Below are positions 1-39,600 of a stretch of 40,976 bases of DNA, one piece after another. The stretch's first letter is position 1, and every line of letters begins with the position of its first letter. The translations under genes were made by a program, and so were the position numbers. Origin of the DNA: Octopus bimaculoides (Eukaryota); the NCBI RefSeq assembly GCF_001194135.2, contig NC_068982.1:159598369-159639344 (forward strand). Reading direction: 5' to 3'. Below the pieces are notes generated by a model. That model had not been told where the DNA came from. It worked only from the letters and a program-made list of their open reading frames with translations, and did no database searches.

Positions 1-178
1 ATATATATATATATATATACGTAAGTCGACTATAATTCCATAAGTAAGGGAAAATATGCACTCCTATACCTGTCAATAGAGTGGGTGTATTATCTCAAGT
101 ATACAGCATTGCATATCCATGACAGTCGATTTTACCAATGGAGAGCAGTCGTCATATTTGATTCCATATCGAGTACCT

Positions 179-253
179 CTGATGAGTGTAGGGTCATATA
201 ATCAGGCTGTTACCTAACACTCTGTTGTACCCTTAACGCGAAACCGATTGGTA
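179..253 (+). ncRNA. Hammerhead-ribozyme-like core (stems II and III present, stem I not supported), possibly a Penelope pseudo-LTR relic
   Basis: CTGATGA at 179-185, then an imperfect stem II (GTGTAGGGT 186-194 pairing with ACCCTTAACGC 229-239), GAAA at 240-243, and stem III (ACC/GGT around a GATT loop) ending in GTA at 251-253. The bases before the core (TACCT) do not pair with those after the cleavage site (AAATC). Confidence 0.35.
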
Positions 254-684
254 AAATCATATCGTACATTTCGGATAGTATGTGTGTATGTGTAGGTTTG
301 TGTGTATGTGTGTGTGCGTGCGTATATATGTGTGTATATAGTAATACATACAAATTTATATTTATGAATATATATAAATATATATATTTATATGTGTGTG
401 TGTGTGTGTGTGTGCATATACAACAATCTATTTATTTATATCTACACACACACACACATGAGGCTGTACATGGAGTTCCTACGGAATTATATATGAATGT
501 ATATAGAAGTGTGTATTCGTCAGTTAAATATAACTATGTGAATGGGAATAATAAAGTTTCAAATGCATAAAAATCTGCGAATGAAGACCACAATGAGAGA
601 GTAATACATAACTGTTTGTCGATAATAAAGCTATTAATCTCATCGATACCTGAGTCATAATTATCGTGGAAAACACTCAACAGA

Positions 685-985
685 GAATCACCTGTCACAA
701 GACTTTGCTGCCCACAAGAGAGCAGTTTTTGAGCCTACTCTGCACTCATATCAATTCCAATTTCTATAACATATATCCTCTTAGCCGTAACATGTCCCAA
801 TGTAGTGCCTTGGGCAAAAAGTCGTGTCTGCGTTTATATTTCTTATTTGCATATTATGTGCATAGTGGATTCTTCTTCCGATTTACTAACTCTGCATTTT
901 GCACTCTTCTCGGATTTGTCTATTTTGGCCTTTATGATATTCGTCGGCATTGGTTGGCCTTCAGCAAACGTCATTAGTCTCTTCG
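685..985 (-). mobile_element. Decayed 3' ORF fragment of an RLE-type non-LTR retrotransposon (R4/Dong-like), internally deleted
   Basis: Manual minus-strand translation across frameshifts gives TNIIKAKIDKSEKSAKCRVSKSEEESTMHII and KKYKRRHDFLPKALHWDML (zinc-knuckle region). It is joined near 770 to EIGIDMSAE*AQKTALL, the C-terminal helix of this protein class. Confidence 0.75.
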
Positions 986-1399
986 TTATTTCTTAATAAC
1001 TTCACGAAAATATTTCTCTACGAACAGATTAAGTTATAACCTCAATAATATATTTCCTAGCAACAATATTTAAAATCCAATGCTATTTAATATTTCGTTC
1101 ATCAAATAAATATATGAATCAGATTTTAATTGTTTAAAACTCTATTACGCCGCACTGGTTTTGGAATTCCAGTACATTAAGATTGGCCGTTCACTCCTTA
1201 TCGTAAAATAATATTAACACTGCAAATTTGTAATTAGTATAAGAAAAACTATTACCAGATATATTCGAAAATGAAAAGTATTTTCCCGCTGGATAAACGA
1301 GTTTGTAATCTGCGAAAGTACTTATTTATTTACAAGTACATAATATTTGAACATTTAATCAGTAGCTATAATATAGCAATATTTAAGCTTTCTTGCCAT

Positions 1400-2320
1400 T
1401 TGTTGAGAAAAATAACTGGAAAAATATTACTGAAAACATTCAGCGTCAGATATCAATTGGCATATCCAATCAACTCTCTCCTCTTTCAAAATATAATATA
1501 TAGAAACGAAGAAAATCCCTTGAACCTTTGCTTGAAAAAATTACTTCCAGGCATTAATATTTAGTGTGGGAAATGTGCCTCAGTTTTAAATATGGAAGTG
1601 ATACATGGTAGATAAATGTACTTTTGCGGAGAAAACCAAACCTCCTGGAAAATCACATCTCACACACAACAAATTAGGAATTCTATCGACTAGTAACATC
1701 TCACTGATTATCTGTCGGATTAATAAAGCTAGCGGAAATGCTGGACAGCCTTCAAAAACTACCAGCATTACTAAAGGAAACAAAGTTCATGACGAGACTC
1801 AATGAACTAGAAAAGACAAAGTATCATTAAAGGAATTAATTAAACATACACACTATTCAATAAAGCTTATAAGAACGAGCTGGAATTTAAAAACAAAAAA
1901 GATGACAATAACTACAAAACAAAAGCTGAAAAGAATTCGTTCTCTGTTGTAAAAAAGCACATTAAGTCCAACCCGAACACACCAATCAAACTAAAATAAA
2001 AATTTGATAATTAATTATCCTTCAGACGCAACCTTCTTTTATCACAAAACAACTCACCCATAAGGATAATTACCAATAGCACTCCACTATAAAGAAATGT
2101 CTCATAGAAAATGCTATGAAACTGACAGAAATACACAAGTTAGAATAGCCGACTCCTTCACTACACAAGCGTCTGGAAAATACTAAATGCTTGAAAGTAC
2201 TATAAAAGTTGTGGCCTATCTTTAATGAAACTTACCTAATAGTAAGCGATAAACTGTATACGAAGAGAAAACACCCCATAATATCAATGAAATGACGTGT
2301 ACAAAACGCAATCGTAAACA
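1400..2320 (+). mobile_element. Heavily decayed Penelope-like element (RT to GIY-YIG remnants)
   Basis: Scattered colinear peptide remnants: YMVDKCTF (~1600, YVDD-like), SHLTHNKLGI (~1655), ETDRNTQVRIAD (~2120, YIGETxR-like) and KRKHPII (~2265). All are broken by stops and frameshifts. Confidence 0.35.
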
Positions 2321-4296
2321 GTATTTTGATCAAGAAAAGAAACTTAAGCAGTCACTTCCGGGCTGTCTGAAAATCGAGCAAAAAGATAAACACTTATGGG
2401 ACTCATTAATCAACCAAAACTACGACGATCTTAATAGAGGTTATACGGTTAGTTGAATTAATCAATTTAATTATAATTATGAATGTTACCGTTACACATC
2501 CAGCCCATATTGTTATAGAAATTGTCCTGTAAAAGATGAGGCTACAATAGTAAAGTGCTACAAATGCAATAATGGACGCCCCTATGAAAAGCACTATTCA
2601 ATAGGGAGTCACATCACAACAATTAACGGCAATCCAATTTACGAATAACATTATGTCAAAAATGCTTGAGAATGGCTCCCCAAAATTGGCTTAAATAGAA
2701 TCATTACAAAATCTAATAAAACTAATGAGTTAAATTAAAATATGCAACCTCAACAGACAACGTGAACTATCGGAATTATATTTAAAATTTTTAGTACTGT
2801 TCTTATTTTATCTTGAATCATTTGGCAAAATTTTGGATAGTCTTTCCCTTTTAAAGAATGTTTACTTCGGTCTTTAAAATAAAGAATTAATAAAATTTCA
2901 GTCTCTCTTTCCAAACATTTTTCTCACGGTACATTATATTGATTAGGTGCCTTATATTGATTAGATTGGACAGAATTTTTGAACTACGTATCATTGAAAT
3001 TGAGTTTAATTCCATAGACATCGTTATTATGTACATTAGAAAATTAGACTTCTAATTATTAAACACCGATAACCATCTCAAAAGCACGAAGTAAATAACA
3101 AAACTTCATAGGATTTTAGAAAAATCAAATAAAGAAAAAATTGAATTATTTAAATGTACACCATCCGTTTCGGAAAATTAACGTAAGAAACAACAGGATG
3201 TAAATGGAGTATTTGTTGGAGACTGCAACAAGCTATGATTTATCATAATTGCACTACCAGAGTTTCGAACGTAGGAATTTAAATAACGGTTACTCAACAA
3301 TAGATTATCTGTGAACTTTCTTATTAGCGTTGTCATTCAAATGAAAGGAAAAGAGAATTTAACTGGAATAAATGGACAGATTTCACTGTATATTTAGAAT
3401 CAAAACTGTCACTTTATAACATTACATTTTTAGTCAAAATTCATATCCCAGTTACATAAAATGTTACTATTACGCATTTCAATCTAATTAAAATCAATAA
3501 CAATGGTAATGGTGAAGAAAGCGACAATGAAAGATACATGGTAATGGAAAAAAGGCTAAGAATGATTGATGGTATAGTAAAGATAACCTGGAGTCTAGCG
3601 AAGAGGTGCGTACAAATAGTATGCGACTATACTTTTCCCGTCAAAACTAACGCCGCATTGACCGAATACTTTGGGTAGGAGAGATCATCATCCTCTTGTG
3701 CACACATGAAAATTCCTGGTAGGCCACGTCAGCTCCAGGCTTTTATGCCTATAGTATAGACGTGTAGTGCGAGCTCGTCGTATCAAACCATGCCAGAAAC
3801 CTTTTGGGATGTCATGGGCAAAATAAATTCGTAAAGTTTGTAACGAGAAGACTACAAGCTCAATCGCTTCCAAGAACGACCTTCGTTAAAGGTATGAATT
3901 ATATGTAACTGCCTGTGATATAACTGCACTTTTGTTGTAGGCACTCGGATTTCCATATTTAATGCACCTATCTAGCATGCAGCCAATTTTATTAAGTTTT
4001 AGCGACTAATCAATAAACTTCGCATACAAATATTGGTCGGTTAATAAAATGTACTAGCACCATAATGAATTCGATTTCTTCAGCAGTGACTGAACTTATG
4101 GTATGGTTATTGTTTCGGTAAAGTTCAAAATCGAATTACGTTTTAAAATAAAACATGAATAACTTCTGTACTGGACTTTGAATATCATTTATCTTACCGG
4201 ATATACATTCTTTTTCAAAACACATGTAATTAACGCAGCACATAACCTGAATAAAATAGCTAACCTTTTCTACTGGGTCTATTGTTTATATATATA

Positions 4297-4395: not shown

Positions 4396-5462
4396 GTGAA
4401 AAATGAAAGACAGAAGATTGGTGGAATATACGAGAATTTATCATTAATCGCTACAATTGTTTCGACGCATCTAGCATCGACTCCTCTTGTGTGGGACACT
4501 CAACAACTAGTTCAGGATCATCCAGTGTTGCAGAGGTATCGCATCGGGTGATAAATAAATACCATTCGTTTTGTAGAGAGAAAAACAGCCAGACGGAGGA
4601 TCAAAAACAAAATCACAGAGAGCAAAAAGACAAACGAACACGCAATCCAGTAGGAAATTTATTTAAAATAACCGTTAACATGTATGGATCTATGAACACC
4701 GTCGGGCAAGCTGCACGGCACACGTACACTCGCTTATACGAGCATCCGCAAAAATGTGAGCATGCGCACATGTGAGATTTAGTGCACTCCTGATAAAAAA
4801 GCGAGTTAGTTATCTACTTGGTGTTTATAAGAATGGGGAGGTTAAAAGAAAATCTAAGTCATATATACCTTGAAGTAAATTAAGTTAATTTATCCGTTTC
4901 TCAAAATTCATTCTCATTGCATTGTAAGAAAGTACATTTATATACGTGTAGGCATCTCGAGAGTCGTTCAGAAATTCTATTAACTATCTTCTCGTTAGTC
5001 CACAGAATAGACAGGGATTCCTCGGAGCAGAGACGGCATCTCCTGGAAATTATATTGTATGGTTTCGCATATCTTACTATGGACCAGTTAATGCTGTACT
5101 TCGTTCTATTCTAATTCAGTCGCCATACAAAATCTGCCAAACATGTTGACTGTCTCTTATTGATTGTCTTAAAGCTGGCAACATAGATACGATAAAGATT
5201 CTTAAATGAATCAGCCGTCTTCCCAATATAAACAAAGGGTCCCTTGTGTGCGCGGTACATTTATATACAAAATTTGTACTCATACAGAGGTTCATCAAAG
5301 GACAGAATTATTAGGCACAACATTATCAATTCGGGCAAAATACATGATAAACTCTTTGTTAGTACACCAGGCTTACAAATTATTTAGATTAGTAAAGGAA
5401 TCTGCTTCAAATTTACTACAATAAAGAAAAAGTGATGTAGTAATTATTTATATACCTTGTCT

Positions 5463-5464
<2 letters not shown>

Positions 5465-5532
<68 letters not shown>

Positions 5533-5540: not shown

Positions 5541-5639
5541 TGGGCGTGTTATGAAAGACATTTTAAATTGTTAGAACGATTTCACCAAAAATGCTTTCAC
5601 TGCATTTTGAAAATTTAATTGGTCTTTTTTACTCCAGAC

Positions 5640-6325
5640 ACAAACGTCTTTGCCTCTGCAGACATCACTTCAATTAAATAAATGATTCTGAAAAGCCAAA
5701 TGAGATGGTATGGCCGTATTGTTTGAATGGCGGATGAACGCACGTCCAAACAGCTGTTTTATGGTGAGCTTGCAGAGAGGAAACGCAATCAATCTAAACC
5801 TAAATAGAGGCTTAAGGACGGCATAAGGACTACCATGAAGTCACTTGGAATGGATCCAAAGGTCATAGAAATCCTTTTTATCGGATCGAGCAGGATGGCG
5901 AACAAAGGTGTGAAGTAGAGGAAAGCGTTTGACGAGGCCAGGTAACACATGCAAGATTCAAGAGAAACTTAAAGAAGAATGTTGCGATCGAAAAGGTGAA
6001 TCTCAGTGCTCTTTTCTCTGTGCACAGTATGCCACAGACCATGCCTTTCTTTTCCTGGATCCAAATCTCATTTGCAGACCCATAAAAAAACGAAAATCCA
6101 CCAACAATTCTACCTATATATCTGTGCATACCTTTCAATGTTGTTTATGTCATAAGGTCTGCAAATCTAACGGATACCTCAGAATTTAACTGCAGCTCTT
6201 GGCGTTCCAAATCAGATATGCAATCTATGTGGGTGTCTTTTCAATACATTGTCTGGGTAAAAAATCCGCAGCAGACACCTTGATGGAGCTAAGGTGTAGG
6301 TATGAGAGGTGGTCAGACTCAGCAT
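5640..6325 (+). mobile_element. 5'-truncated RTE-clade LINE 3' end with three tandem C2H2-type zinc fingers
   Basis: Translation from ~5645 gives MILKSQMRWYGRIV*MADERTSKQLFYGELAERKRNQSKPK*RLKDGIRTTMKSLG (RTE C-terminal region). It is followed by CTVCHRPCLSFPGSKSHLQTH (6021-6083), CCLCHKVCKSNGYLR (~6139-6183) and CNLCGCLFNTLSG*K (~6219-6265). Confidence 0.85.
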
Positions 6326-7940
6326 ATATACACATCCATTCTTCTTGCTTTTATTCACCCTTATTTTTTTTCGTTTTTCATTCAAAGTTGTCATGCAAAT
6401 ATTATAATCCTTCCTATATATTCAATTGGTGCATTCCCTTCCTTGTTCATTCATTCATGCTATTCTTGTTATCGATTCTATTTCTCCACTTTTCCAGTAG
6501 GATGTTTACCTTGTCTGCTTCTATTATCTATTTTAGCATTTGTTTGTTTTCTGCTCTTTTACTTATATTAATATATATATATATATACATATATACATAC
6601 AAAGATCCATACATATACATATACCTGCGTATAGATATACATATGCACACCTACACGCACACGCAAGAGCGCAAGCACACACACACATTATATATGTATA
6701 CATAAACATATGTGCCAGTAAATATGTGTAAGTATGATTTTATGTCTGTATAAATATATGTATGTATATTTTCTTCTCCGCGTATCTTCATTTTCATGAA
6801 ATTTAGTTTACGGATATTTTTGTCACCATCAAAGAAAATGATTTATATTACTTTCTCCAACTTGTCATTTGGGAAATGTTTAAATTCCATACTTATCTAA
6901 AGAAATGCTATGGGCAATATTGGAGTTTGTTACATTCTGTACAAACCCATGTGATATGTTTTTTTTTTTTATCTAAATTATTTTGACGCATACAAAAGTG
7001 AAAAATAAATTTCATGCTTAAACATTAATGGGATAAAACCTGTTCAATAATATATAATTGTCGTTCTTCAAATACCTAAAGAATGCTTAAAAATTAAAGT
7101 AAATTGAGTGTTACACAGCTTCTAAAGCTTCTAAAATTTTAATAATAAAACCTCTTGGTAAATAGTTGGTTTAGGAAACAAGTGAAGCTGTGAAAATAAG
7201 TTAAAATATGACAATTGTTTTTCACCATAATATATATGTAACAAATTAGCTGTCGTACTAAGGGAATACAGCAAGGTAAAACTGACTTGCAACTAGAATG
7301 AATATTTTAAGACGTTGTTTCCTATGAATTATTTAACGCACAGTGGTGATGGGAATGGAACTACGCATTGTTTTAATGAAATAACTAATAGATAGGAGAA
7401 AAATGAATCGAAATGTTTTCGGTTTTTACAACTGTATATTGCATGCAAGGAAAAGAAGTATATGCTTTACACGTAGTACAAACAAATCTATACTCTCATT
7501 AAATTTTAACAGATAGATAAGATGTAAATTTAAAAAAAACGCATACACACAACACAATAAATTCACAAACACGTATACAAAATTAAACGCGTGTACTCGC
7601 CTTTCTGTATACAAAAATCCTCACATATATACATGCATACATAAATACATACAGACATATATACTCATATGTGTGGGTGTGTTTCTGTATGTTTATACTG
7701 TGTGAATATCGCATATGCATAAATTCCAGGACGGTAGCATATAGCTGTTAATAGGTTAATATTTGTAAATAAAGTATTGTAATAGTATTTCTTCACAAAT
7801 ATCTGGAATATTGAAATTCATAAAAATAATTTCATGGCAAAGGAAAATGAATAGGCATTTCATTTGGAACAAGTGATTCAATATAGTGCAGGAATGATGC
7901 ACATTGAGTTCTTATCAATATTAACAATAAGTACTAATAT

Positions 7941-8716
7941 ATCCTCTCCATATGGCCAAACTACCTCAACATTCGTGTATCCATTTTGGTTGTTAGTTTT
8001 CCACTCATTCCTGCTCGCCTTCGCATTTCCTCATTCCTCACCCTGTCACACAGATTATAGCCCTGAGACATCTCATCTCAAAAACATATAGTCGCCTTCT
8101 TTCCACATCTCTTCTTTTTACGTCTCTGCACCATTTAACATTGTCGGCATAATCACGCCGTCATACACACCTCATTTCGCTTTCATGCTCAATCTTTTAT
8201 CTCTCAGCATATCCTTCACAACTCCAAATATCTTGCTCCTCTCCCTCACTCTGTATCCCACTTCCTCAGACATCCCACCATCCGCTGATACATGTTATCC
8301 TAGATACTTAAAAGCAATCACCTCCTCTAACATCTCATCATTTATACTCACATCCATCTTACCAGCCATCCCATCTCTCGGACATTTCATCACGTTACTC
8401 TTAGCTACATTCACTTTCAATTTTCTTCCTCCCACATACTCTTCCAAAATTTACTACCAATCTCCTCAGTTGCACTTCCGAATCCGGCACCAGTGCTCAG
8501 CAAACAACAACTGACTCACCTTCTATTTCTCTCTGTTTTCTCCCACCATTTGGGTTTTCCTACTATATGTTCTAGCATTTACTTCTCTCGCCACACCATC
8601 CATGTATAAATTAAACAGCCACGGAGACATCACATAACCTTGTCTTAACCCCACTTTCACATCAAACCACTCACTAAATTCACCACCCACCCAAACGCAC
8701 GCCCTACATTCTCTAT
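7941..8716 (-). mobile_element. RTE-clade LINE, inverted RT-to-post-RT segment (5' part of a 5'-inverted insertion)
   Basis: The minus strand reads RECRACVWVGGEFSEWFDVKVGLRQGYVMSPWLFNLYMDGVAREVNAR, then FKYLG, then NGAET, RRRLYVFEMRCLR, DRVRNEEMRRRAG and MLR*FGHMER, ending at 7941. Confidence 0.9.
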
Positions 8717-9135
8717 GGATGAGGAGGGGATGGTTACGAGGGTGATGAAGGCAGAAGTGGTAGGTAGCAGAACCAAAGGCAGACCTCGGTTTCTGTGGAT
8801 TGATGGAGCGAGGAAATCTTTGGTGGTTACAAGTGTTAGGGTGAGAGAAGCAAGATAGTTTACAAATGATAGGAAAGCTTGGAGAGTGTTTGTGGATGAA
8901 TGAGTGAATTTGATGTTGCTCAAAGGGGTAAGGAACGAACATGATGTGCAGCGGATAAACCAGCATATGCTGTCGGGCCCCCGCTTCTGATATTGGTGGT
9001 TGAGTCCTATGGCTTGACCTGAGCATAGAACGGGGCTCGCTTCTTAGAGCTGTGGATTGTATGGAATGCCTGGCGTGTGTTTTGATTTGTCTACCCGCAC
9101 CTTAAAAAGGGAAAAGTCATGGGTATATGTATAAA
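8715..9135 (+). mobile_element. RTE-clade LINE, sense 3' segment (ORF C-terminus plus 3' UTR) of the same insertion
   Basis: One frame from 8715 to 8903: MDEEGMVTRVMKAEVVGSRTKGRPRFLWIDGARKSL...DRKAWRVFVDE*. It is followed by ~230 nt of GC-richer sequence taken as the 3' UTR; the 3' boundary is approximate. Confidence 0.85.
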
Positions 9136-9177
9136 CAAAAATAATTAATTCATAATTGTTTTATAATTAAGAGTATA

Positions 9178-9183
9178 CATACA

Positions 9184-9234
<51 letters not shown>

Positions 9235-9595
9235 GTGTGTATGTGTACACACATATAATTATAAAACAATTATGGATAAATTATTTTTGTTATATATATA
9301 TATATATATGAGANNNNNNNNNNNNNNNNNNNNNNNNNNNNNNNNNNNNNNNNNNNNNNNNNNNNNNNNNNNNNNNNNNNNNNNNNNNNNNNNNNNNNNN
9401 NNNNNNNNNNNNNNNNNNNNNNNNNNNNNNNNNNNNNNNNNNNNNNNNNNNNNNNNNNNNNNNNNNNNNNNNNNNNNNNNNNNNNNNNNNNNNNNNNNNN
9501 NNNNNNNNNNNNNNNNNNNNNNNNNNNNNNNNNNNNNNNNNNNNNNNNNNNNNNNNNNNNNNNNNNNNNNNNNNNNNNNNNNNNNGTCTCTCTAC

Positions 9596-13334: not shown

Positions 13335-14734
13335 GCAGTTCGAACAATTGTTCTCCTTACTGCAATTAATGCATACGAGACAGTATTTGTAGCCTGTCTG
13401 GTGTCTTAACGCAATCTTCAGGCAATGTCTACATGACATTACAATCGAAAGATAAGAAGACGTTAGAATGAAAGAAATTGCAAAGAAAGACGAGAAAAAC
13501 TAGATATAAAATGTGCCATTTTGAAAGCCGGAAAACGAATAAGAAAAGAGTAAAATGTAAAAGGGTAGAATTAGAGTTCTTCCCCTTTCACCGTATAATG
13601 TAATGCTGGAAAGATTGTAGCTCAGAATATGCTGTACAACAGTTCAAAGCAGAGAGGGTAGTACTTTCCTATTCGTGAACAGGAACTTAGCCAAATGCTT
13701 ACAGCAGCTGAAAATTCTGGGTCGAAAATACAGCAGTGTGATAGAGTTCTTAGGTCTGAAAGTGAACTGATTATTTCAGCTACATGTAGCTTAATTTTTT
13801 TTCATCTGTTAACATGTGATGTGCAGTTTGCGATATTCCCCACGTTATCGTATGTGATGTGGCGTTCGACTTCAAAAGTGATAAATGGCTAGCCACCTTA
13901 GTAGCTTTATTTATTTATTTATTTATTTTTCTGTTGATATCACCATGAAGGAGCAATACTCTATGTGTATATATATTACAAAGATGTTATAGACCCTCTG
14001 CCGAAAGACATCGTCGTATGTTTTAGAAAAATAAAACTTTTTTCTTTGTAGAATATACTGAAATATTAGGAATATAGTGAAGAGGACGAAACATATTTAG
14101 TGAACGATATTTAAAAGAACAGAGGAAAACGTACACACAAATAAAAAAAAATCTATTTTTAAATGATAAATATATATTTGGACTAAAAATTACATTGAGT
14201 GCCAAGGAAGGAGAACTAAATAAACTATTCTTTAGAACACTCTGATTGAATATTAGAAAGATCATTTTGTTCTGTAAGTACGATGAAACATCAAACCGAG
14301 CATTCATACAAAATCGGAACAAGAAATCAATGCAAATTATCCCGTACCAAAAGGAACTAAATCTGCAGAGAAACGTCAATGTGAACACCTAGTTTGGTAG
14401 ACGGAGCCAATAAAAGTAATCGCATCACCCGTGAAGCGCATCCTACACTTTTGAAAAATATATGAATTATAGTATTGCATTCTACAATGGAGATAACGTA
14501 TTATAGGTTTCATTATGCGTGAAATCCTTATAAGTGTGATAACGATTGAAAATATTTAGAAAATCCGTGTGTTTAATCAGAAACAAACTGGAACTATACT
14601 TCATCTCCATATAACAGAAGAAAAAGGAAGATAACAAATGGATAAATAATAAAGAATATTACACCACGCATTCTCAGAACGATTGTTGGTGAACTCTTCG
14701 TTACTTACGAAATGATATTGCCTTCAGCAATATA

Positions 14735-14945
14735 TGCGTAATGAAATCAATCGCCATCAGAAAGACAAAGGGCTATAAAATGCAACCATGTCTCACGCTG
14801 ACAGCAATTTTGAACATATTGGTATTTTTGCTGCTCGCCTTCATGCAACACTATAATGTCCTGATGAGAGACTTAAAGAAATTGTTACATCGGGATTTCA
14901 TAGACCCAAGATTTTGTAGGGGTGCATCTCGGTGAAAACTGTCGA
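14735..14945 (-). mobile_element. Short decayed non-LTR RT fragment (RTE/CR1-like, GVRQGC region)
   Basis: The minus strand reads KILGL*, LIRTL and NMFKIAVSVRHGCIL*PFVFLMAIDFI, matching the GVRQGCxLSPxLF RT motif. Confidence 0.65.
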
Positions 14946-14957
14946 ATACTCTTGATG

Positions 14958-14989
<32 letters not shown>

Positions 14990-16690
14990 NNNNNNNNNNN
15001 NNNNNNNNNNNNNNNNNNNNNNNNNNNNNNNNNNNNNNNNNNNNNNNNNNNNNNNNNNNNNNNNNNNNNNNNNNNNNNNNNNNNNNNNNNTATATATACG
15101 TATATATATTGACATTATGGCAACATTTACACTTCATTGTTTACTCTTAATTCAAAGCTTCAGTTTACACAAAATGGTTTATTAATGACTTTGAAAATAT
15201 GGCCTTCATGAAACCTGAATGAATCTTTGAATTTTGTCTAATAAATTATAAATTCAATTATGCGTGTTTATATAATACATAAAATAAACCCAAATTTCAA
15301 ATCGCAAGTATTTAAAAAGCGCTGCAATTCCGTTTTGAAATTGCAAAATTGATTACAATCTATTTTATTAGATCAAATATTGGGAGAGAATTATATCAGG
15401 TGATAATCAACTATGAGCATTTGTGTACAGATCACACACGATCACTCTACATTTCCTACCTTATGATATGTGTGAGTGTATGTATGTGTCCGAGTATGAA
15501 ACTCGTAACACGCTTCAATACAAGGACGAAAAGTATAGACAGAAACAGTTTAAATAAGCGAATCCCTAACAGGTCTTTCACAGTCATGTCATTTTTTTTT
15601 TCAGTTGATGCATTCGCACATAGATACTCTGTGTTAATTAACTGTCAAAGATACGTTAAATGCAATAGTTGTTTCTGTGTTGATGCCATACATTTGTCAA
15701 AACTTTTATATTTCGGCAAAAGAAAGCAATATTGATATAGAAATGAGATCAATTAAACCTTGTTCTTTCTTTAAATTATAAGTTATAGTAGAGAAAAAAT
15801 ATGGCCGTTAATAAATCCACGTGACATCGCAGTGTATCTAAATTATATCTTGTGCGTACAGTAATTTTCTCAGCATTAGCTTTTCGTTCTCTCATTACAT
15901 ATTTTAGATAGAAATGAGTTATTTTTTCCAATAAAATGATGTTTTCGGATAAATGGAAATCATCAGCAAATCAATGTTACCTAGATATGTTAAGCTATCA
16001 TATATTCATTGATTTCTAACAAATGAACAACAGTAGCGAATCATGTCATTAAAACAGATGCGCTTAAATTTTGTCTTCGTCACATTAAGTGTATTCATTA
16101 AAAGGCAAAACTGAACTATGTCAAATGTTTTGATAGAATTCAGAGAAAAAAATCCTTGTGTCGAGTAATAATAAGTACAAGATCGCCATTGATTGATGTA
16201 TATCTAATTAGTAGCTCTAAAAGTTAGGGGTTTTTATGCAGTTGATGAATTAATATGCTTAAGTGGCAGGAATATGATTGACAATTTTTGCACTTTAGTT
16301 TTCTATATATTTTTGTAGATACACATAACTTAATGGGTGTGCTGTAACATTGTTGCTCTATGTGCAAGCAAGAGTAATCATATAACCATGGAATCAAAAC
16401 TACTTTTTGATAATTGCTAAATCATAGAGAAGTATGATAAAAAATGTATCCGTATATATAAATAATAAATTGATATTCATTATATAGGTAATTAGTGAAA
16501 TACCATCACGTACCGAAAGACATAATAATAGAAAATTATATGAATGGCATATAGTTGAACGAGTCGACTAAAATAAGCATTAATATTTTAAAGTCTGATG
16601 TTTATCCTTGCAGCCCTTTTAACGAATCGTTAGGTTGCATGTGAAGCTCTGGTCGGCTGCAAATACAAAGACAAAAACACGTGCACATAA

Positions 16691-24569: not shown

Positions 24570-24616
<47 letters not shown>

Positions 24617-24625
24617 TACACACAC
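24570..24625. repeat. (CA)n microsatellite
   Basis: Directly visible. Confidence 0.9.
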
Positions 24626-25496
24626 ATACGCATGTATGCATATATGTATAAATGAATAAACATTTACAAATATATGCATTAGTGGTCAAATGTACCAAAA
24701 TTCTAACGATAAACAATGGCACACCAGAACTGTAGTAGAAATCAAAGGATATGTACCTGNNNNNNNNNNNNNNNNNNNNNNNNNNNNNNNNNNNNNNNNN
24801 NNNNNNNNNNNNNNNNNNNNNNNNNNNNNNNNNNNNNNNNNNNNNNNNNNNNNNNNNNNNNNNNNNNNNNNNNNNNNNNNNNNNNNNNNNNNNNNNNNNN
24901 NNNNNNNNNNNNNNNNNNNNNNNNNNNNNNNNNNNNNNNNNNNNNNNNNNNNNNNNNNNNNNNNNNNNNNNNNNNNNNNNNNNNNNNNNNNNNNNNNNNN
25001 NNNNNNNNNNNNNNNNNNNNNNNNNNNNNNNNNNNNNNNNNNNNNNNNNNNNNNNNNNNNNNNNNNNNNNNNNNNNNNNNNNNNNNNNNNNNNNNNNNNN
25101 NNNNNNNNNNNNNNNNNNNNNNNNNNNNNNNNNNNNNNNNNNNNNNNNNNNNNNNNNNNNNNNNNNNNNNNNNNNNNNNNNNNNNNNNNNNNNNNNNNNN
25201 NNNNNNNNNNNNNNNNNNNNNNNNNNNNNNNNNNNNNNNNNNNNNNNNNNNNNNNNNNNNNNNNNNNNNNNNNNNNNNNNNNNNNNNNNNNNNNNNNNNN
25301 NNNNNNNNNNNNNNNNNNNNNNNNNNNNNNNNNNNNNNNNNNNNNNNNNNNNNNNNNNNNNNNNNNNNNNNNNNNNNNNNNNNNNNNNNNNNNNNNNNNN
25401 NNNNNNNNNNNNNNNNNNNNNNNNNNNNNNNNNNNNNNNNNNNNNNNNNNNNNNNNNNNNNNNNNNNNNNNNNNNNNNNNNNNNNNNNNNNNNNNN

Positions 25497-27003: not shown

Positions 27004-27071
27004 TGCATGGAGGTGTATGTATATACAGTTATGTATGCATTTGCATATACACGCAACTAGATGCGTGGGTG

Positions 27072-27108
<37 letters not shown>

Positions 27109-28007: not shown

Positions 28008-28700
28008 TAACCTAATTAACCATATATATATATGTGTGGGTGTGCGTGTGTGTGTATGTATACACACATATATCATACTTTTCTTCCCCGTTACTCAAAT
28101 TGTATATATGATTTTGTATGTAAGTATATACATATGTGCGTACGCACACCTACCACACTCTTGTACAACTATAACATAACGCATTAATGCGATTAAACAA
28201 TAATAATATGATCAAGTAAACTTTAGAACGACAGATAATTTATCATTCTAGAATAATAGACAAGAAATCTTGGTAATTATTGCTACCGTTGTTTAGTTGT
28301 TTCATTACAGACTGTAAGAGTAGTTTCATTGCAAATAGGTGTGTGTTTGGCCATTACTGAGATGTCGTTTTATTTAGATATTGTGTCGCGTTACAAATAG
28401 TACGCATCTGTTATTTTAAAGATCTCTGCGTACTTGCTACTTTGTCAGCATTACTAGCCTTGTGAATGGAAGTATCACGTAGCTGCCCCAATGCACCATT
28501 AAAACTACTACGCTAGGTTATTGCAACAATGCCATAAATCCTGTCTGAGTCAGAGTTACAACTGAGTTACAATGACTCCTGAATTGTTTCATTACAATCA
28601 ATGTATAAATAAAAATACAGAGATATTTCATTGACAATCCAGTAATTTATTTATATTACAATATTGCATTAAATACTATAAATATAATATATATTCTTCT

Positions 28701-30677
28701 TAGGCCTCCGTCGGTCATGGATCACCATGGATGATGTCATCCGTCCGTTGAGTTGTTTATTTAGTTTTTGCAACGACTCCAGTGGCTGTAGAGACCGATG
28801 CGAGAGTGGTAGTCTCGTTTGCAGAGGCTCGGTTTTCAGCTGCCGCCACCTTCAAATTCCCTTCGCCGGTCTGCAGTTGTTTGTGAAGAGTGCCTCTCCA
28901 GCTGATTTGATCGGCTGAGAGATCCTCCCAAGAATTGCTGTTGATGCCAAGTGCCTTAATGCCCATCTCGCACACGTCCCTGTACCTCAGCTTCGGGCGG
29001 CCAATGTTTCTCCACCCTGCGACAAGCGCTCCGAAAAAGACATCCTTTGGGATCCGACCATCTCCCATACGGCGAACGTGGCCAAGCCAGCGCAGCCGAC
29101 GTTGTCTTTGCAAGGTGAGTATGGTGGGGAGGCGAGCACCAGACAGAACGTCAGTATTGGTTACTTTGTCTTGCCAGGAAATGCCGAGTATGCGTCGGAG
29201 GCTTCTGAGGTGGAAGGTGTGAGCAGTTTGTCCTGGCGGGCGTACGCGATCCATGTCTCCCTGCCGTATAGCAGAGTGCCTAGGCCGCAAGCACTGTGCA
29301 CAGCCATTTTCGTTTTCACTGTTAGCTTGGCGTGAGGCGAGCGAATGTTGTGGCTACCTTTCCTATCCTCTTGTCTATCTAAGCATCTAGGGAGAGGTTG
29401 TCGGTGATAGTGGAACCAAAGTACATGAACTGGTGGACGACCTCGAGCTCATAGTTGTCGATGGTGTTGACAGGTGGTGCCGGCGCGTCTTGACCCATAA
29501 CGTAGCTGCAGTTCCCTCTAAATGTGAGTCGCAACTGCAGTGTCATAAGCGAACAGCGTGTTTCTAGTGAGGACTTCACGGAAGTTGTCCTCGCTCTTAG
29601 GCGGGCAAGATTGAACAGCCTACCATCCGATCTGGTCCGTAAGTATATTCCCTCTTGTACTGTGCCAAATGCATGCCTCAGGAGGTGTGAGAAGATCCCG
29701 AAAAGGGTTGGGGCGAGTACGCAACCTTGTTTCACCCCCGCTGCGTATGTCGAAGGGCTCGGAGAGGTTGCCGTTAAAGTGTGCAGTCCCTTTCATGTTG
29801 GAGTGGAAATACTCGATTAAGCTGTGCAGTTTTAGAGGACAGGTGATCTTTCGGAGAGCTTTGAAAAGACCGTCTCCGCTGACAAGATCAAAGGCCTTGG
29901 TGAGATAAATGAATGCGACGTAGAGGGGCATCTGCTGCTCTCCATGTCTACCGTGTATCTTGCAGCTTGGAAGTCGCACTGTGATTCTGGGTATATACGT
30001 TCAGCCAGCTTCTGCAAACGGATCAACAGTACTCCAGCGTATACTTTACCAACTACGTTAAGGCGGGATATACCTCTGTAGTTGTTGCAGTCACTTCTTT
30101 CGCTCTTGTTCTTGTAAAGAGTGCTCCACCCATCTCTCCATCTGCCTGCTTTGGTCGGTAATGATTTCCCCAGTGGTGGATTTGAGGGCGGCGTTCTTGC
30201 TTTGTGTTGGTCCCAGTGCCTTCTTGATGCCGTCATACATGACTCTGATGTTGCTTGTTGCAGCGGCCGTCTGAATACTCTCGCTGAGCTCTGTCCAGTA
30301 CTCGTTGATGCAGTGCCTGGCGATGTTCTGAACCTTGCTTCTAGCGGCCCTGAGAATATGCAGGTTTTTCTCAGTAGGTGACCGCTAGTATTCTGCGAGT
30401 GCGGCGCGCTTAGCCTCCATGACGGGGTTCATCGCGGACGACTTGGCGTCAAACCAGTCGTGTGGCTTCGAGGTTTTCTTCCCAAACGTTTCCAGGGTGG
30501 TGCGGTGGATGGTGTCTGACAGAGTTTCCCTCTTCTCTGTGGTGGTATCTCCGACCTACGATGCCTTGTATACATGTACAAAGGCCTCTGCGAACTGTTC
30601 CACAAGATCGAGATGAGTCATCTTGCTAACTTCAATGCGCGAGGCTCCCGGCTTCTGGTTGCAGCCTGATCTTGCAG
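28701..30677 (-). mobile_element. RTE-clade (BovB-like) LINE: post-endonuclease linker, RT and C-terminus to the 3' end, pseudogenised
   Basis: Starts at CKIRLQP (30677). Contains NYRGISRLNVVGKV, IYLTKAFDLVS, KQGCVLAPTLFGIF, LFAYD (YADD equivalent), RRLRWLGHVRRMGDGRIPKD and the LCKRDYHSRIGLYSH finger remnant. Ends CCGACGGAGGCCT followed by a short (AAG) tail. Confidence 0.95.
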
Positions 30678-32092
30678 GTTCCGAAGGTTGTCACAGCCGG
30701 GGTGGTAGTAGGGATAAGCGCCCACTATCTACAAAAAGGGCCCGCATGGCTTGCGTCTCAAAAAGCCTCTGACAACCAAAGTCCAACTCCCGGCCTGCTC
30801 GTGACGGAACAGCGTTTACAGACAGGAGTAGGAGCAAAGGCGTGTCTCTTGCGCCTTAAAACCAAATGCTTCGGGTAGTTGGTGCTCGTCAGCCTAGGAA
30901 GGCTGCCCATCTAGGAGAAGGAAAACTCTAATTTCAAACCTCCGCCGCTCCCTTGTGGCAATATCCACTCATGGAAAAGGCTTCAGGAGTAAACCTGGAT
31001 GAAAAATCTGGAGTCGGAGTCCCTAAGGCGGCTCGATGCTGATCTCAACCTCGTCTGGCAGTTCTTCCGACCGTGTTGACGCCAAACTGTAGTAGCCCTG
31101 CTGTTTGTTTGGATCCATCAACGAGGTGGAGAGGGGGTAACAGGCTGTTCTCTATATCACACTGGCCAGGCTTACATCCGTCCACACCATCCTATACACA
31201 TACAACTGTACCTGGAGAGGACACTCCAGCTTCCCCATTGATATGTTGTCGACACAACACGGGGAGCAACAGATACCGGTTATAAGCCTTCACTCAATTG
31301 GTGTAATATGCAGCGCTAGTGGTTGCTTGAGTAACACTGGACAACTACCTCCCGTCCCAAGCTGGGCGGCCCCCAGCCAGTAAGGTGTTGTCCCGTCACA
31401 GTCTGCCATCTTCATTGGGTGCATGGGGATTAGGAAAACATCCGACAACCAGACCGTTAGTCACAGCACCAGTTAACAACAAAATAAAACATTAATGAAA
31501 GAGACCAGCTCTAAAACTGGGGTGTTGGAATGTCTGGTCAATGATGCCCACTTTTTCCCAAGATCTTCAGGATGTCCGTGACGCCAGGAAAACAGCTGTC
31601 ATCAACGACGAGCTCAAAAGACTGAATATCGGCATTGCAAGAAACATATCTAAGTCGTGCAGGCACACTGAAAGAGAAGGACTACACATTCTTCTGGCAA
31701 GGGAAGAACATTGACGATCCCAGAGAGCATGAACTGGGCTTTGCAGTAAGGACCAGCTGGCTGAATATGATAGACCCAAACAGCGGCGGCTCTGAGCGAC
31801 TCCTAACACTCCACCTTAACAACTCGTCAGTGTGTACGCTCCAACGCTGTCCGCCACTTCGGACACCAAGGATGAGTTCTACAAGAACCTTGCATCTACC
31901 ATCAGGAATATGCCAAGTGCCGAACAGCTTGTTCTCCTGGGCTACTTAAATGCCAGAGTGGGTGCAGACTACGAGTTGTGGCCCTCTTACCTCGTTTCGT
32001 TTGGAGTGGGAAAACTCAATGAGAATGGTCAGCGACTGCTCGTGTGTTGTGCCCTTCACAACCTGTGCATCACCAACTTCTTCTTCAAAACG
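30678..32092 (+). mobile_element. Inverted 5' UTR and AP-endonuclease segment of the same RTE element
   Basis: About 800 nt of GC-rich UTR-like sequence, then from 31499 KRPALKLGCWNV, TLKEKDYTFFWQGK, GFAV, YAPTL, KDEFY, LLGYLNARVG and NENGQRLL...LCITNFFFKT. This APE domain is on the opposite strand to the RT. Confidence 0.9.
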
Positions 32093-32245
32093 CCCAATCT
32101 ATGCACCTGTCTATGCACCTGTCTTCACATGTGTGCCATTTTCCACGCGAATCCACCCAATCTATGCACCTGTCTTCACATGTGTGCCATTTTGCACGCG
32201 AATCCACCCAGCCATTTGGCTGTGAACCTCAAGACAAGTAAGAAT
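32093..32245. repeat. 51-bp tandem duplication with a nested 12-bp duplication at the inversion edge
   Basis: The unit CCCAATCTATGCACCTGTCTTCACATGTGTGCCATTTT(G/C)CACGCGAATCCA occurs at 32156-32206 and at 32093-32155, where it carries an extra CTATGCACCTGT. Confidence 0.9.
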
Positions 32246-32282: not shown

Positions 32283-33525
32283 GATAGGTCGGCAATTTGA
32301 CAACTGCTCATTTTGCGCTGTCTTCATATTTTGACAATCTTTATCTTTTGTTAGAAAGCTGACACAGCTATTTCTTTGTTCTAACACATTTTGCGCTTTA
32401 TAAAGTATTTATAAATCGTTGTTTGCTATTTTTGTTTAGAGATGGATAAGTCGGAAATTTGTACAGTTTTGAAATATGACTTCTTTCCTGGAAATACAGC
32501 ATCACAGACTGCTCGGAATATCAATGGATTATTTCATTCTCATGTTATTACGCAGCAGACAGTAGCAAATTGCAAAATTGTGTTCTAGTAAATTTGACTT
32601 CACAAATGAGCAACGCGGTCGACCAGAAACAAAGCTGAGTAATGAGGAACTGAAAGCCATCGTCGTGTCAGATCCATCTCAAAGTGCCCGTGAATTATCG
32701 TTGTTGTTTGGTGTTAGCAAGCAAACAATATTGACTCACCTAGTTCAAATTGCTAAAGTGAAAAAGTTAGATACGGGGATTCCACATGACCTCAATGAAA
32801 ATCAGAAACAGCAATTTTTAGAAGCCTGCATTATGCTACTTTCTCGTTACAAAAATGAACTATTCTTGAATCGAATTGTAACATGTGATGAGAAATGGAT
32901 CCAATACAACAATTGTAGACATTCATCACAATGGCAGGACAAAGACGAGCCGAAATAACACAGTCTAAATAGCAAAATTCATCAAAGGAAGGTAATGGAG
33001 TGTGTCTGGTTGTCTGGCGCAAGTGTGATCCATTATGATTTCAGTAAACCTGGTTCACTAATCATGTCCGAAGTATACTTCAGCCAACTGGACCAAATGA
33101 TGCAGAAACTTACAAAAAAGAAAAAAAAAAGCCTAGATTAGTCAGCAGATCCACTCTTATTTTATTGCAAGACAACGCTAGACCAACCATCGCAAAAATG
33201 ACATTGGCGAAACTACATGAGATGGAGTTGGAAGTTCTCCATCATCTACTATACTTTCCTGATCTTGTCCCCACTGACTTCCACTTCTTCCAGAATCTGG
33301 ATAAAATTTTGATAGGAAAAAAATTAATTTCGATGATGTAAAACAGGCCATCCAAGATTTCATTGACTCTAGATTGCCAGGCTTTTACAGTTCCGGGCTG
33401 GACAAGCTACCGCTAAGTGTATTGACAATATGGGTGCATAGCTTAATGAATAAAACCATTCCTTGATTTTTAAAACATTAGCAAACTTTTTCTTTTCTAC
33501 AAATTTCATACTTGACGACCTCATA
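32283..33525 (+). mobile_element. Near full-length mariner (D,D34D) DNA transposon with an inactivated transposase (ORF 32442-33453)
   Basis: MDKSEI...RGRP (HTH region), RIVTCDEKWIQYNN, LQDNARP and YFPDLVPTDFHFF, with exactly 34 residues between the second and third Asp. It has a frameshift near 32575, a stop at 32956-32958 and an A-run near 33113-33130. Degenerate TIRs: AGGTCGGCAATTTGA (32286) versus the reverse complement of TCATACTTGACGACCT (33506-33521). Confidence 0.92.
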
Positions 33526-36660: not shown

Positions 36661-39600
36661 TTACATACTACTTCAGAAAGATTGAAATAACTACGAAATA
36701 TTCGTCCTCGCAATAAATTATGTTCTCTTACAGTTCAGATAACACAAATAAGTAACTAGCTTACAGTGGACGAAATCCAGCCCACTACATAATTCAATAT
36801 GATAATGATAAAATATACTACTTTGATCGCAAGTATCATCCTTGAAGCAAAATATTTTTTTTAAAAATGACTTTGTCACTTGAAGTGTAAAGGTGGCTGT
36901 CTAGACAGGAAATAAATAGGACTAAGGCAAAGCATGTCATCTTGCAAGACATTTGCATTGGTATCAAGTCGACTTAGAAGAATAAAAATGTTTTATGGAA
37001 GTCTTGTTAATATATTAACAAACAAGTGTGGAAGGATCAAGATAAATCTGCAAAACAGAGAAAGAGACTTATATCTTCATAAAGCCAGTTTCAAGTATAT
37101 TTATCAATGCTAATGTTCAAAATTTAGAAAAACAGAAGAAACGTGAAACAAACCATATAAAACCACGTAACCCTGCGATGTTCAAATAGTGGCTGACGAA
37201 ACTCGTAGAGTCACTTACTGTTAAATATGTGTACATGAAAATATTCTTATTGATTTAACTGCATCAGGTTATTCAAGTGTTATTGATCCGCCTTGTCAGG
37301 TGAAAATATTTGGTGATTTAAAATAATGTGCGATGTCAACTCGGAAATGCTCTAGAAAGAAAAGTAATGTGGATGTGAATGATTAGAATCCATATAAACA
37401 TGAAATATTGCAAGCGTCGTTGTAAAGGATTCTTTATTCTGTATCAGAAAGCAGTGAGATTTTGAACAATAGAATGGATTTTTTGCCAACGACTAAGTAT
37501 AGATATGTGTGTGTCCATGTACGCGTATTTGTGCGCGTGTGTGTATGTGTGAGTGTATAAGTGTGTCCTTGTGTGTGTACAATTGATGTAAGCAAAATCT
37601 AACAAATAAAGCGAAATTTCAAAATATAACAATTGAATACGTAGGTGCCACTATTTATTCTTTTGATGCCCAAAGGAAATTTCTTGCTTTTCTTCTAATT
37701 TAATTTTTCTAGTGCAAGACACGTCTTATATACAGTTATAAATGTGTGCGTTGTTGGGTCTTGACGACTATAGAGTGTATCCCATCCACGTCGTTTAGTG
37801 AGCTCTAAATAGCATAAGTGATAGAAACAAGTCCTGTCAAACAAGAAATGGTGCAAGGAGGTGTAAGGCTTATATAATATATGGAAAGTCTTGATTTTCA
37901 GTTGATTGCTTTTTATATGATAGATATTTCAATTATAATAGGGCTTAGTATATCATAAGTGCGTCATATCTCTTGAGATGTTTGACACTTTGTGGATTCA
38001 TATGCATCGGGATCATAGATTGAACATAATGTTTGTTCTCATTTATATTTTACTGGGTAATACTTCATGTATTCTGTTATAGAGCGGTTTGCTATATGTT
38101 AAAATAAAAATTCGTCTCATAAACATTATCGTTCTATTAAGCATTACTGAAGACTAAAGTATTTATCCGGCTAATATGATATATATGAATGGTGCTTATC
38201 TACAATTTAGCAAACTAAAAATCGTAACAAATATAATTCGCAATGAATAGTCACTTTTAGAACTGACTTGAAAATATTTTATCTCTTCATTGTTATAACC
38301 TGACGTAAATAAGTACACAAATGTTGCTAAAAGAAAACTGCATGAGCATTGCCAAGTGTTTTGTGTAGTTTTATTTTTTCGTTTTGCTATAAAGCCCTTG
38401 CAGTCTTTTTTACCTTCTTGCGTCGTAACTTTGGTAAAAAGCAAACGTTCTAAGTCTAGCGTATTAATATATAGATGATGTATATTTCGCTACATAATTT
38501 CAATGTCTCTACAAATGTTTATTTTATCTCTAATATCCCGTTGGTGGAAATTTTTTGCTAATATCGGTAATGCAGCAATAATAACACCACACGCACTCGC
38601 TCAGATACACACAAACACGCATACAAAGACAGACAGACATATATATACACGCGTGCACGCGCACACATGTGTGCGTATGTGTCTGTGCATGTGTATCTGT
38701 AAATATATTTGATTAGATTCAAAATTTCTTTTTTCATATTACATAATTCGCTATCACAAAGAATAGAGCCGTCATACATCTATATTTTTGTATTGTAACA
38801 TTGTTTTCATTAGCAACACATTTACTCTCTCACAAATTCCGTATTGATCTTTACAAATTACCAATATACTTACTAATACAACTGCCTTTATATCGCTTTT
38901 CTGTTCAACACCCAATTCATGAGTTTGCATAATATACGATGAACATCATTGAACATTAAACATCCTTAGTAAGTTAAATCACCTTCTACTCGACTATTTA
39001 ACTAGGAAGTCCTAATGTTGATTTTACCTCAAAACCTATTAAATATTTGAATTTACATTCTTTAAATTCAGTAATTTAAATCTGCATTCATATCATTATT
39101 TTCTTATTGCTTTATAGTTTATCAAAATTAAAAAAAAAAAAACAAGGTTAAATAATTCTAATAGCAAAGAATGATAAACACGCTCATACTTGCATCCGAT
39201 TGAAGATATCGAAGCTTACATACAAATAATTCACAGAAAACCAATGCATGAAAAGTTGAAAGAGCTATAAATAAATAGAAATCATACTTTCATATAGTAA
39301 ATTAAATGATATAGGATATATTAAATATCGCAAGGAGCTTTATATGCAAATTTCTATTTAAAATCGCTATTTTAAATATTACGTTATAATTCCTAAATCT
39401 TTGAACATCCAAACACACAACTAAATACACACGCAGCCATATATGCACAAACAAATAATCATACATACCTGCAAAAATTCATGTACGAACAAAAGTCCAC
39501 ATGAAATACAATGATGCATAGATACACGTGAGCGTAACTACAAAATAAGGAAAAAATGTAACATTAGAAATGAACACAATATAGAACTACAAATAAAGAT

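Follow-up and report, generated by a model that had tools for sequence, protein, structure and literature searches.

Introduction

Twin priming is reportedly the process by which 5'-inverted L1 copies arise, an account that is said to go back to Ostertag and Kazazian in 2001.

The 5'-inverted L1 copies of human and mouse, and their explanation by twin priming, are reviewed elsewhere (PMC2912911, PMC4245944). Inverted L1 inserts carry TSDs of 10-20 bp, and it has been proposed that the second priming event needs a long 3' overhang (PMC4245944). According to a systematic comparison in cell culture, 5' inversion depends on the LINE species as well as on host factors: inversions were recovered with human L1 in human cells and in one insert of the zebrafish element Nimb-2_DR (I group), whose TSD measures ~12 bp, in chicken DT40 cells (PMC4245944). 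Since inversions in culture are nearly confined to human L1, the prior expectation of finding them in other LINEs is lower. TSD lengths peak at 10-12 bp for the RTE clade; those of L2 and CR1, from which no inversions were obtained, are 3-5 bp (PMC4245944). RTE elements therefore fall in the permissive range, and an RTE inversion would be compatible with the overhang model. RTE elements also carry microsatellite-like 3' repeats (PMC6007223).

Here we describe a LINE copy found in a stretch of 40,976 nt, the whole of which was analysed and is referred to below as the window. Like the 5'-inverted L1 copies of human and mouse, this copy consists of an inverted 5' segment and a sense 3' segment whose ends are adjacent on the consensus, with a very small overlap and possible microhomology, and it was dead on arrival. 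Unlike L1, it belongs, by its relatives, to the RTE-like LINEs with a single APE+RT ORF, and it has neither poly(A) nor a recognisable TSD. The Nimb-2_DR insert resembles it in being a non-L1 LINE with a 5' inversion; that insert, however, was obtained by experiment in a heterologous vertebrate cell and represents another clade, whereas we are concerned with old genomic copies in an invertebrate. With BovB, RTE-1 and their Au-like SINE partners (PMC6007223) our element has in common a compact APE+RT ORF (as seen in its relatives), microsatellite-like tails and AT-rich targets, and, as in ordinary RTE insertions, the 3' UTR and tail region are retained. Ordinary RTE insertions, in contrast, are full length or simply 5'-truncated, and 5' inversion is not part of their described signature. 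In the searchable literature, the papers ranked highest for twin priming all concern mammalian L1 or sequences that L1 mobilised. That literature, including the part on RTE and non-mammalian elements, yielded no report of genomic twin priming outside L1, and earlier observations may exist. An earlier sequence-only reading of this DNA had remarked that the process is rarely described outside L1, which fits that literature, the Nimb-2_DR insert being the only non-L1 case.

Results

Structure of the first LINE copy

The copy is decayed and ~1.2 kb long (7941-9133, ~1,193 bp), and its front part is inverted relative to its 3' part. Its features are listed in Table 1, together with those of a second LINE discussed below.

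The inverted segment holds the C-terminal half of the RT and the post-RT region as far as ...LRxFGHMER, with the SRACVRVG region, LRQG.VMSPWLFN, the FADD motif region and KLKVNV as landmarks. Read on the minus strand from 8714 to 7941, it opens with RECRACVWVGGEFSEWFDVKVGLRQG and continues ...LLFA...KLKVNV...FGHMER, the last element bases being AGG AT at 7941; a longer form of the same reading, with interruptions, is RECRACVWVGGEFSEWFDVKVGLRQGYVMSPWLFNLYMDGVAREV...LLFA...KLKVNVAKS...YLG...NGAET...FEMRCLR...DRVRNEE...FGHMER. At the DNA level the segment is 65-68% identical to the related contigs L013, L014 and L001 (blastn), and the rebuilt translation matches Pfam RVT_1. On the plus strand, the sequence from 8715 reads ATG GAT GAG and translates as MDEEGMVTRV...RPRFLWIDG...AWRVFVDE (that is, MDEEGMVTRVMKAEVVGSRTKGRPRFLWIDG...DRKAWRVFVDE), with its natural stop at 8901-8903. 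The sequence-only reading had placed the GHMER end on the minus strand and the MDEE start at 8715 on the plus strand, and the sequence does read so.

In a reading of the three frames, the inverted piece is interrupted by ~5 in-frame stops and by frameshifts, of which there are at least 4; a single premature stop (8856-8858) interrupts the sense piece. Judging from its sequence, the copy is old. Both pieces have a GC content of 0.43-0.47, against 0.22-0.28 in the flanks (28% in the left one). According to the earlier reading, flipping the left piece would rebuild one continuous ORF; the colinearity of the two pieces is borne out, and the open frame is not, there being stops and frameshifts in the inverted piece and a stop in the sense piece.

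We also observe a chance ORF of 167 aa at 8523-9026 on the minus strand, which crosses the inversion junction and in which real RT sequence is fused to the sense piece read in antisense. ORF-calling software would take it for a gene.

Table 1. Coordinates of the two LINE copies and of the candidate TSDs in the window.
Feature	Position	Strand	Position in L017	Basis or content
Inverted 5' segment, first LINE	7941-8714	minus		translation, Pfam RVT_1, tblastn of 17 homologues and of the L001 and L014 ORFs, blastn
AT dinucleotide at the internal junction	8715-8716	either		sequence; two nt more than in L001
Sense 3' segment, coding part	8715-8903	plus		translation, tblastn
3' UTR of the sense segment	8904-9133	plus		alignment with L001 and L013, GC drop
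Left candidate TSD copy (AACAATAAGTACTAAT)	7923-7938	plus		12/16 match to 9134-9149
Right candidate TSD copy (AACAAAAATAATTAAT)	9134-9149	plus		12/16 match; also the start of a palindrome with 58-nt arms
Second LINE, sense part	~28700-30758	minus	~1616-3438+	linker, RT, C-terminus and 3' end
Second LINE, inverted part	~30840-32098	plus	~233-1552	upstream region and APE residues 1-193
Second LINE, aligned block	30871-32091	plus	268-1542	71.5% over 1294 nt
Second LINE, aligned block	30120-30662	minus	2273-1731	DNA alignment
Second LINE, aligned block	29506-30123	minus	3198-2536	DNA alignment
Second LINE, aligned block	29331-29478	minus	3438-3291	DNA alignment

Adjacency of the two pieces

A database search with the rebuilt translation (330 aa) returned 98 homologues, the best of them ~50% identical over 99% of the query in one alignment. 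When eleven homologues are aligned, GHMERMDEE is conserved, and ...WFGHMERMDEERL... forms a conserved stretch. For each of 17 homologues of 450-570 aa, tblastn ends the minus piece at some residue n (position 7943) and starts the plus piece at residue n+1 (position 8715), without exception (17/17). For example, the boundary falls between residues 499 and 500 of P0007, 404 and 405 of P0002, 409 and 410 of P0008, and 511 and 512 of P0017. It falls between residues 910 and 911 in the 973-aa ORF of L001, and the two pieces are likewise adjacent on the L014 ORF. The reference for all these adjacencies is a set of related families and not a same-family consensus.

The DNA agrees with the protein. 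Against L001 the rebuilt junction, ...GGAGAGGAT followed directly by ATGGATGAGGAG, aligns with ...GGAAAG--AATGGATGAAGAG, so that the two are colinear apart from a 2-nt insertion, AT, in the window copy; this insertion matches the 2-nt AT overlap claimed by the earlier reading. L014 (826 nt, 66%) and L015 also cross the rebuilt junction colinearly. If the pieces were independent, chance would make them agree to within 2 nt in ~0.2% of cases, given an element of 3.3 kb.

How much of the sequence is shared at the junctions depends on the assignment of two AT dinucleotides. Read on the plus strand, the one at the internal junction may supply the first two letters of ATG (MDEE); read on the minus strand, it may be part of a Y/H codon, at the position of the nearly invariant Y of SFY. 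The one at 7941-7942 may belong to the element or to the target. Because each can be given to either side, the true overlap or microhomology amounts to 0-2 nt. At both junctions (flank to inverted piece, and inversion point) AT is the only sharable sequence, and 2 nt is at chance level in AT-rich DNA. The RT homology extends to 8705-8720, that is, to within ~10 nt of 8715, from which it follows that no flank DNA lies between the pieces; they abut, as had been claimed.

The sequence-only reading had named RT upstream of RECRAC, in sense orientation to the left of 7941, as evidence that would speak against twin priming. None was found there or nearby in tblastn searches with any homologue. One homologue, P0018, gave a tblastn extension to 7838, which would mean a colinear minus-strand copy; the extension is spurious, with no identity beyond GHME.

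Relatives of the element and its class

The related contig L001 (3143 nt) carries one ORF of 973 aa at 103-3024, with RVT_1 and an N-terminal Exo_endo_phos domain just below the Pfam cutoff. L014 carries the same ORF in two parts (520+472 aa) starting at 118, and its Exo_endo_phos match scores 24.1 bits against a cutoff of 24.5 bits. A (TTA)n tail is reached near 3390 in L014, which ends in (TTA)5, and L013 ends in (ATAG)3. The relatives are thus ~3.4 kb long, with a single APE+RT ORF of ~975-990 aa, no separate large ORF1, and a microsatellite tail. The APE part is missing from the window copy itself. Because the relatives show a single APE+RT ORF, a length of ~3.4 kb and, in place of poly(A), microsatellite tails, the element is likely to be RTE-like and of the RTE clade, an assignment made from the architecture of relatives.

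The homologues have a generic database name, 'mobile element jockey', and the relatives come from Tara Oceans marine metagenomes, an ENA long-read assembly and the crayfish Cherax quadricarinatus. The best relatives are about 50% identical in amino acids and 65-80% in nucleotides; a closer group, P0085, P0090, P0093 and P0097 (contigs L015 and L016), reaches ~60% in amino acids and, over only 132 nt, 80% in nucleotides. No further copy of the first LINE was detected in the window (blastn and tblastn self-search), and a protein search together with a metagenome locus scan turned up no same-family copy elsewhere, only relatives at ~50% amino acid identity or less.

In L001, L002, L003, L013, L014 and L015 the sequence runs colinearly through the breakpoint position. 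Among 18 related loci, most of them short contigs, none has a 5' inversion and all are colinear. It had been proposed that an inversion common to all copies would point to an inherited structure; since the relatives are colinear, the inversion is probably private to the window copy and not a structure of the family, as far as the related families, taken in place of same-family copies, indicate.

The 3' end and the target site

A block of the 3' UTR at 8925-9040, including GGATAAACCAGCATATGCTGTCGGGCC at 8953-8979, is common to L001 and L013 (local alignment to L013, z=4.4). The terminal 90 nt are colinear with the relatives at a similarity that is not significant. The copy ends in a microsatellite-like TATATGTATA at 9124-9133, with no poly(A), and GC falls from 0.47 to 0.22 at 9134. 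Placed by this GC drop, the 3' end of the element lies at 9133 with an uncertainty of ~15 nt to either side (about 9120-9135).

The conserved block contains a motif, GG(A/G)TAAACCAG-N4-6-GCTGTCGGGCC, which recurs at 3115-3143 of L001 and ~1350-1380 of L013. It is kept between elements that are only ~50% identical in protein, and it includes a small CAGC...GCTG stem. The motif is possibly a recognition site for the RT. A search of Rfam gave no match for it, nor for the window as a whole.

The weak AT-rich direct repeat that flanks the element had been put forward as an old TSD. The repeat exists, at 12/16 matches with a longest exact match of 5 nt; it does not stand above chance, the same score being reached by 37% of composition-matched shuffles over the same search space. 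Elsewhere in the window, where base composition differs, 16 of 246 placements with the same geometry reach 12/16. Among the candidates tested, namely this repeat and shorter exact repeats, no TSD exceeds chance. A genuine old TSD could have decayed to the 12/16 level.

To the right, a palindrome begins at the presumed 3' end: arms of 58 nt (9134-9191 and 9234-9291, 81% complementary) surround a (CA)n(TA)n(TG)n centre, and the opening 16 nt of the left arm coincide with the candidate right TSD. Beyond it come (AT)n and then an N gap at 9314-9585. Candidate origins of this palindrome (9134-9291) are a hairpin formed by a microsatellite, a foldback or MITE-like element, and a fault of the local assembly.

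A second LINE with the same layout

The window contains a second LINE, at ~28700-32098, in which the RT (minus strand, 28757-30681) faces a fragment of APE (plus strand, 31511-32092). The first and second LINE share only ~25-32% amino acid identity, and they therefore belong to different families. Homologues of the second occur in Penaeus chinensis, Oratosquilla, corals and octopus, under the automatic name 'craniofacial development protein 2-like', and in a search with the APE and linker single proteins cover both parts at 54-56%.

As a DNA reference for this copy we used a colinear relative, L017 (Logan SRR30067244; Table 1). Sensitive alignment carries the minus piece to ~30758 (L017 ~1616) and the plus piece to ~30840 and 32098, and comparison with a P. 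chinensis copy puts the 3' end at ~28700. On the consensus, the inverted part's outer end (L017 ~1542-1552) has the start of the sense part (~1616-1731) as its neighbour. The inversion point lacks some 60-190 nt of consensus, and ~80 nt at 30759-30839 are assigned to neither piece. No plus-strand continuation was found to the right of the copy, no N runs lie inside it, and no TSD is visible. An isolated 3'-truncated fragment is not a product of TPRT and a flip cannot lose sequence; twin priming is for these reasons the most economical reading of the second LINE's alignments, in a case that would be less exact than the first.

Reading by eye had suggested that the minus strand encodes an APE domain at 30700-31500; tblastn ruled this out. 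Immediately to the right of the copy's outer end (32093-32200) we note a tandem duplication of ~45 nt (CCCAATCTATGCACCTGTCTTCACATGTGTGCCATTTT.CACGCGAATCCA). The ORFs at 32440-33400 look mariner-like by eye (...IVTCDEKWIQYNN...; ...FPDLVPTDFHFF...), and a Pfam search of the one at 32578-32958 confirmed no transposase domain.

Other features of the window

Two very decayed LINE remnants are present, a C-terminal fragment at 5541-5894 on the plus strand and an RT fragment at 14689-14964 on the minus strand, the latter abutting the N gap at 14990; both are ~23-24% identical to the LINE homologues used above. Short interspersed repeats occur at 24570-24675, 27013-27108, 5441-5528 and 38588-38647, with 72-82% identity to copies in a P. 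chinensis locus (L018); for the repeat at 24570-24675, the identity to several copies in that locus is 81-82%. Six runs of N, 42-860 N in length, start at 9314, 14990, 22061, 24760, 27109 and 33533. Several are flanked by (AT)n or (TA)n, which suggests that the assembly gaps sit in long microsatellites. With its wealth of long microsatellites and of gaps flanked by them, the window resembles the DNA of penaeid shrimp (PMC3124438).

Discussion

Origin of the first copy

The first copy matches twin priming in several respects: its 5' segment is inverted, its sense 3' segment runs into the 3' UTR, the ends of the two are adjacent on the consensus, and their overlap is 0-2 nt. From this sequence evidence we consider it probable that the copy arose in a single retrotransposition of an RTE-like LINE, by twin priming or an equivalent double-primed TPRT. 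The sequence-only reading had likewise held that the 5' inversion fits twin priming, and both the geometry, which is as predicted, and the lack of sense upstream RT to the left of 7941 uphold it.

Only the final geometry is observed, and every mechanistic step is inferred from it. The LINE endonuclease would have introduced a nick into the bottom strand at an AT-rich target, and from the freed 3' end reverse transcription would have started on the 3' tail of the RNA. After cleavage of the top strand, the upstream top-strand 3' end (...CTAATAT-3', 7934-7940) could have annealed internally on the RNA, at ...AGGAU/GGAUGAG, with 2 nt, AT, as possible microhomology. From there a second cDNA would have extended 774 nt toward the 5' end of the RNA, starting at the GHMER codons and entering the RT domain, and the first cDNA would have halted at the MDEE codons, ~419 nt from the tail. 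Once the RNA was removed, the two cDNA 3' ends would have been joined, again at AT, and the gaps filled in. The product would read flank, reverse complement of (RT...GHMER), (MDEE...3' UTR, tail), flank, and would later have decayed. Counted against twin priming are the chance level of the TSD, the loosely defined 3' end, and the AT microhomologies, which are uninformative.

It also counts against twin priming that a clean two-break flip after insertion would yield the same zero-loss geometry. In such a history a colinear 5'-truncated copy, running from RECRAC to the 3' tail, would have been inserted first, and two later breaks, one exactly at the element's 5' end and one separating the GHMER codons from those of MDEE, would have flipped its first 774 bp. 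A clean flip keeps every base, in keeping with the 0-2 nt overlap, and after the inversion the quasi-repeat ATGGAGAGGA / ATGGATGAGGA stands as an inverted match of 11/12 at the very junctions where the breaks would have occurred. Nevertheless, one break must then have fallen within a few nt of the boundary between element and flank, as the pieces have no flank DNA between them. The 11/12 match is the best of the inverted repeats that might have driven recombination at the breakpoints, and none of these is significant: 5.7% of shuffles do as well, and the match is too short for homologous recombination. Moreover, the second LINE has the same topology and misses ~60-190 nt, a loss that a flip cannot explain. 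We regard a later inversion as unlikely. (Within the element, the quasi-repeat at the breakpoint takes the form of a tandem ATGGAGAGGA / (A)TGGATGAGGA, at 7942-7953 and 8709-8720.)

The inversion might, alternatively, be the work of the assembler, which could have placed a 774-bp segment in the wrong orientation within a gap-rich, repeat-rich scaffold. The six N runs in the window lend this some weight, the nearest (9314-9585) lying 180 nt off the element, as do the palindrome directly after the element and the fact that LINE families, with their many copies, are easily misassembled. Yet the junctions (7940/7941 and 8714/8717) touch no N run and share at most 2 nt, so that there is no k-mer overlap by which a graph assembler could be misled. 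Nor would one expect from a misassembly that the breakpoints should be adjacent on the consensus and fall exactly at the element end, and a foldback read would produce an inverted duplication rather than an inversion. We judge an artefact to be a little less probable again than a later inversion. Only a shade below this we place descent from a 5'-inverted, non-autonomous master element, transcribed from outside and mobilised in trans. Shared breakpoints are conceivable here, as no same-family copies were found for comparison; all the related elements seen are colinear, however, an inverted copy has neither its own promoter nor coding capacity, and the original inversion would still require an origin resembling twin priming. 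Finally, two separate insertions could have met, a 5'-truncated plus-strand copy (MDEE...tail) beside a minus-strand copy whose 3' end was later deleted. LINE remnants are indeed frequent in the window, but TPRT yields no 3'-truncated copies, the minus strand to the left of 7941 bears no trace of MDEE...UTR, and the end of the deletion would have to agree with the truncation point to within 2 nt of ~3.3 kb, which chance would bring about in ~0.2% of cases. Such a coincidence seems to us highly improbable.

Significance

If the twin-priming reading of the two copies is right, a known mechanism has been found in a new LINE clade and host, on evidence that is anecdotal, consisting of two old copies without TSDs. 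Both of the LINE copies longer than 1 kb in the 41-kb window (2/2) have the 5'-inverted layout. That twin-primed 5' inversion should be frequent among the RTE-like LINEs of the source genome is conceivable, and we lean toward doubting it. The value of the two cases is as a lead for a genome-wide survey. Annotation pipelines for transposable elements that merge only colinear fragments will split 5'-inverted copies and overcount insertions.

The occurrence of the layout in two unrelated families within one window strengthens the case for twin priming beyond L1. RTE-like examples from an invertebrate would show that second internal priming needs neither L1 ORF2p nor priming based on poly(A). Should the phenomenon prove general, twin priming would belong to TPRT as such, given overhangs of at least ~10 nt, and be tied neither to L1 nor to mammalian host factors.
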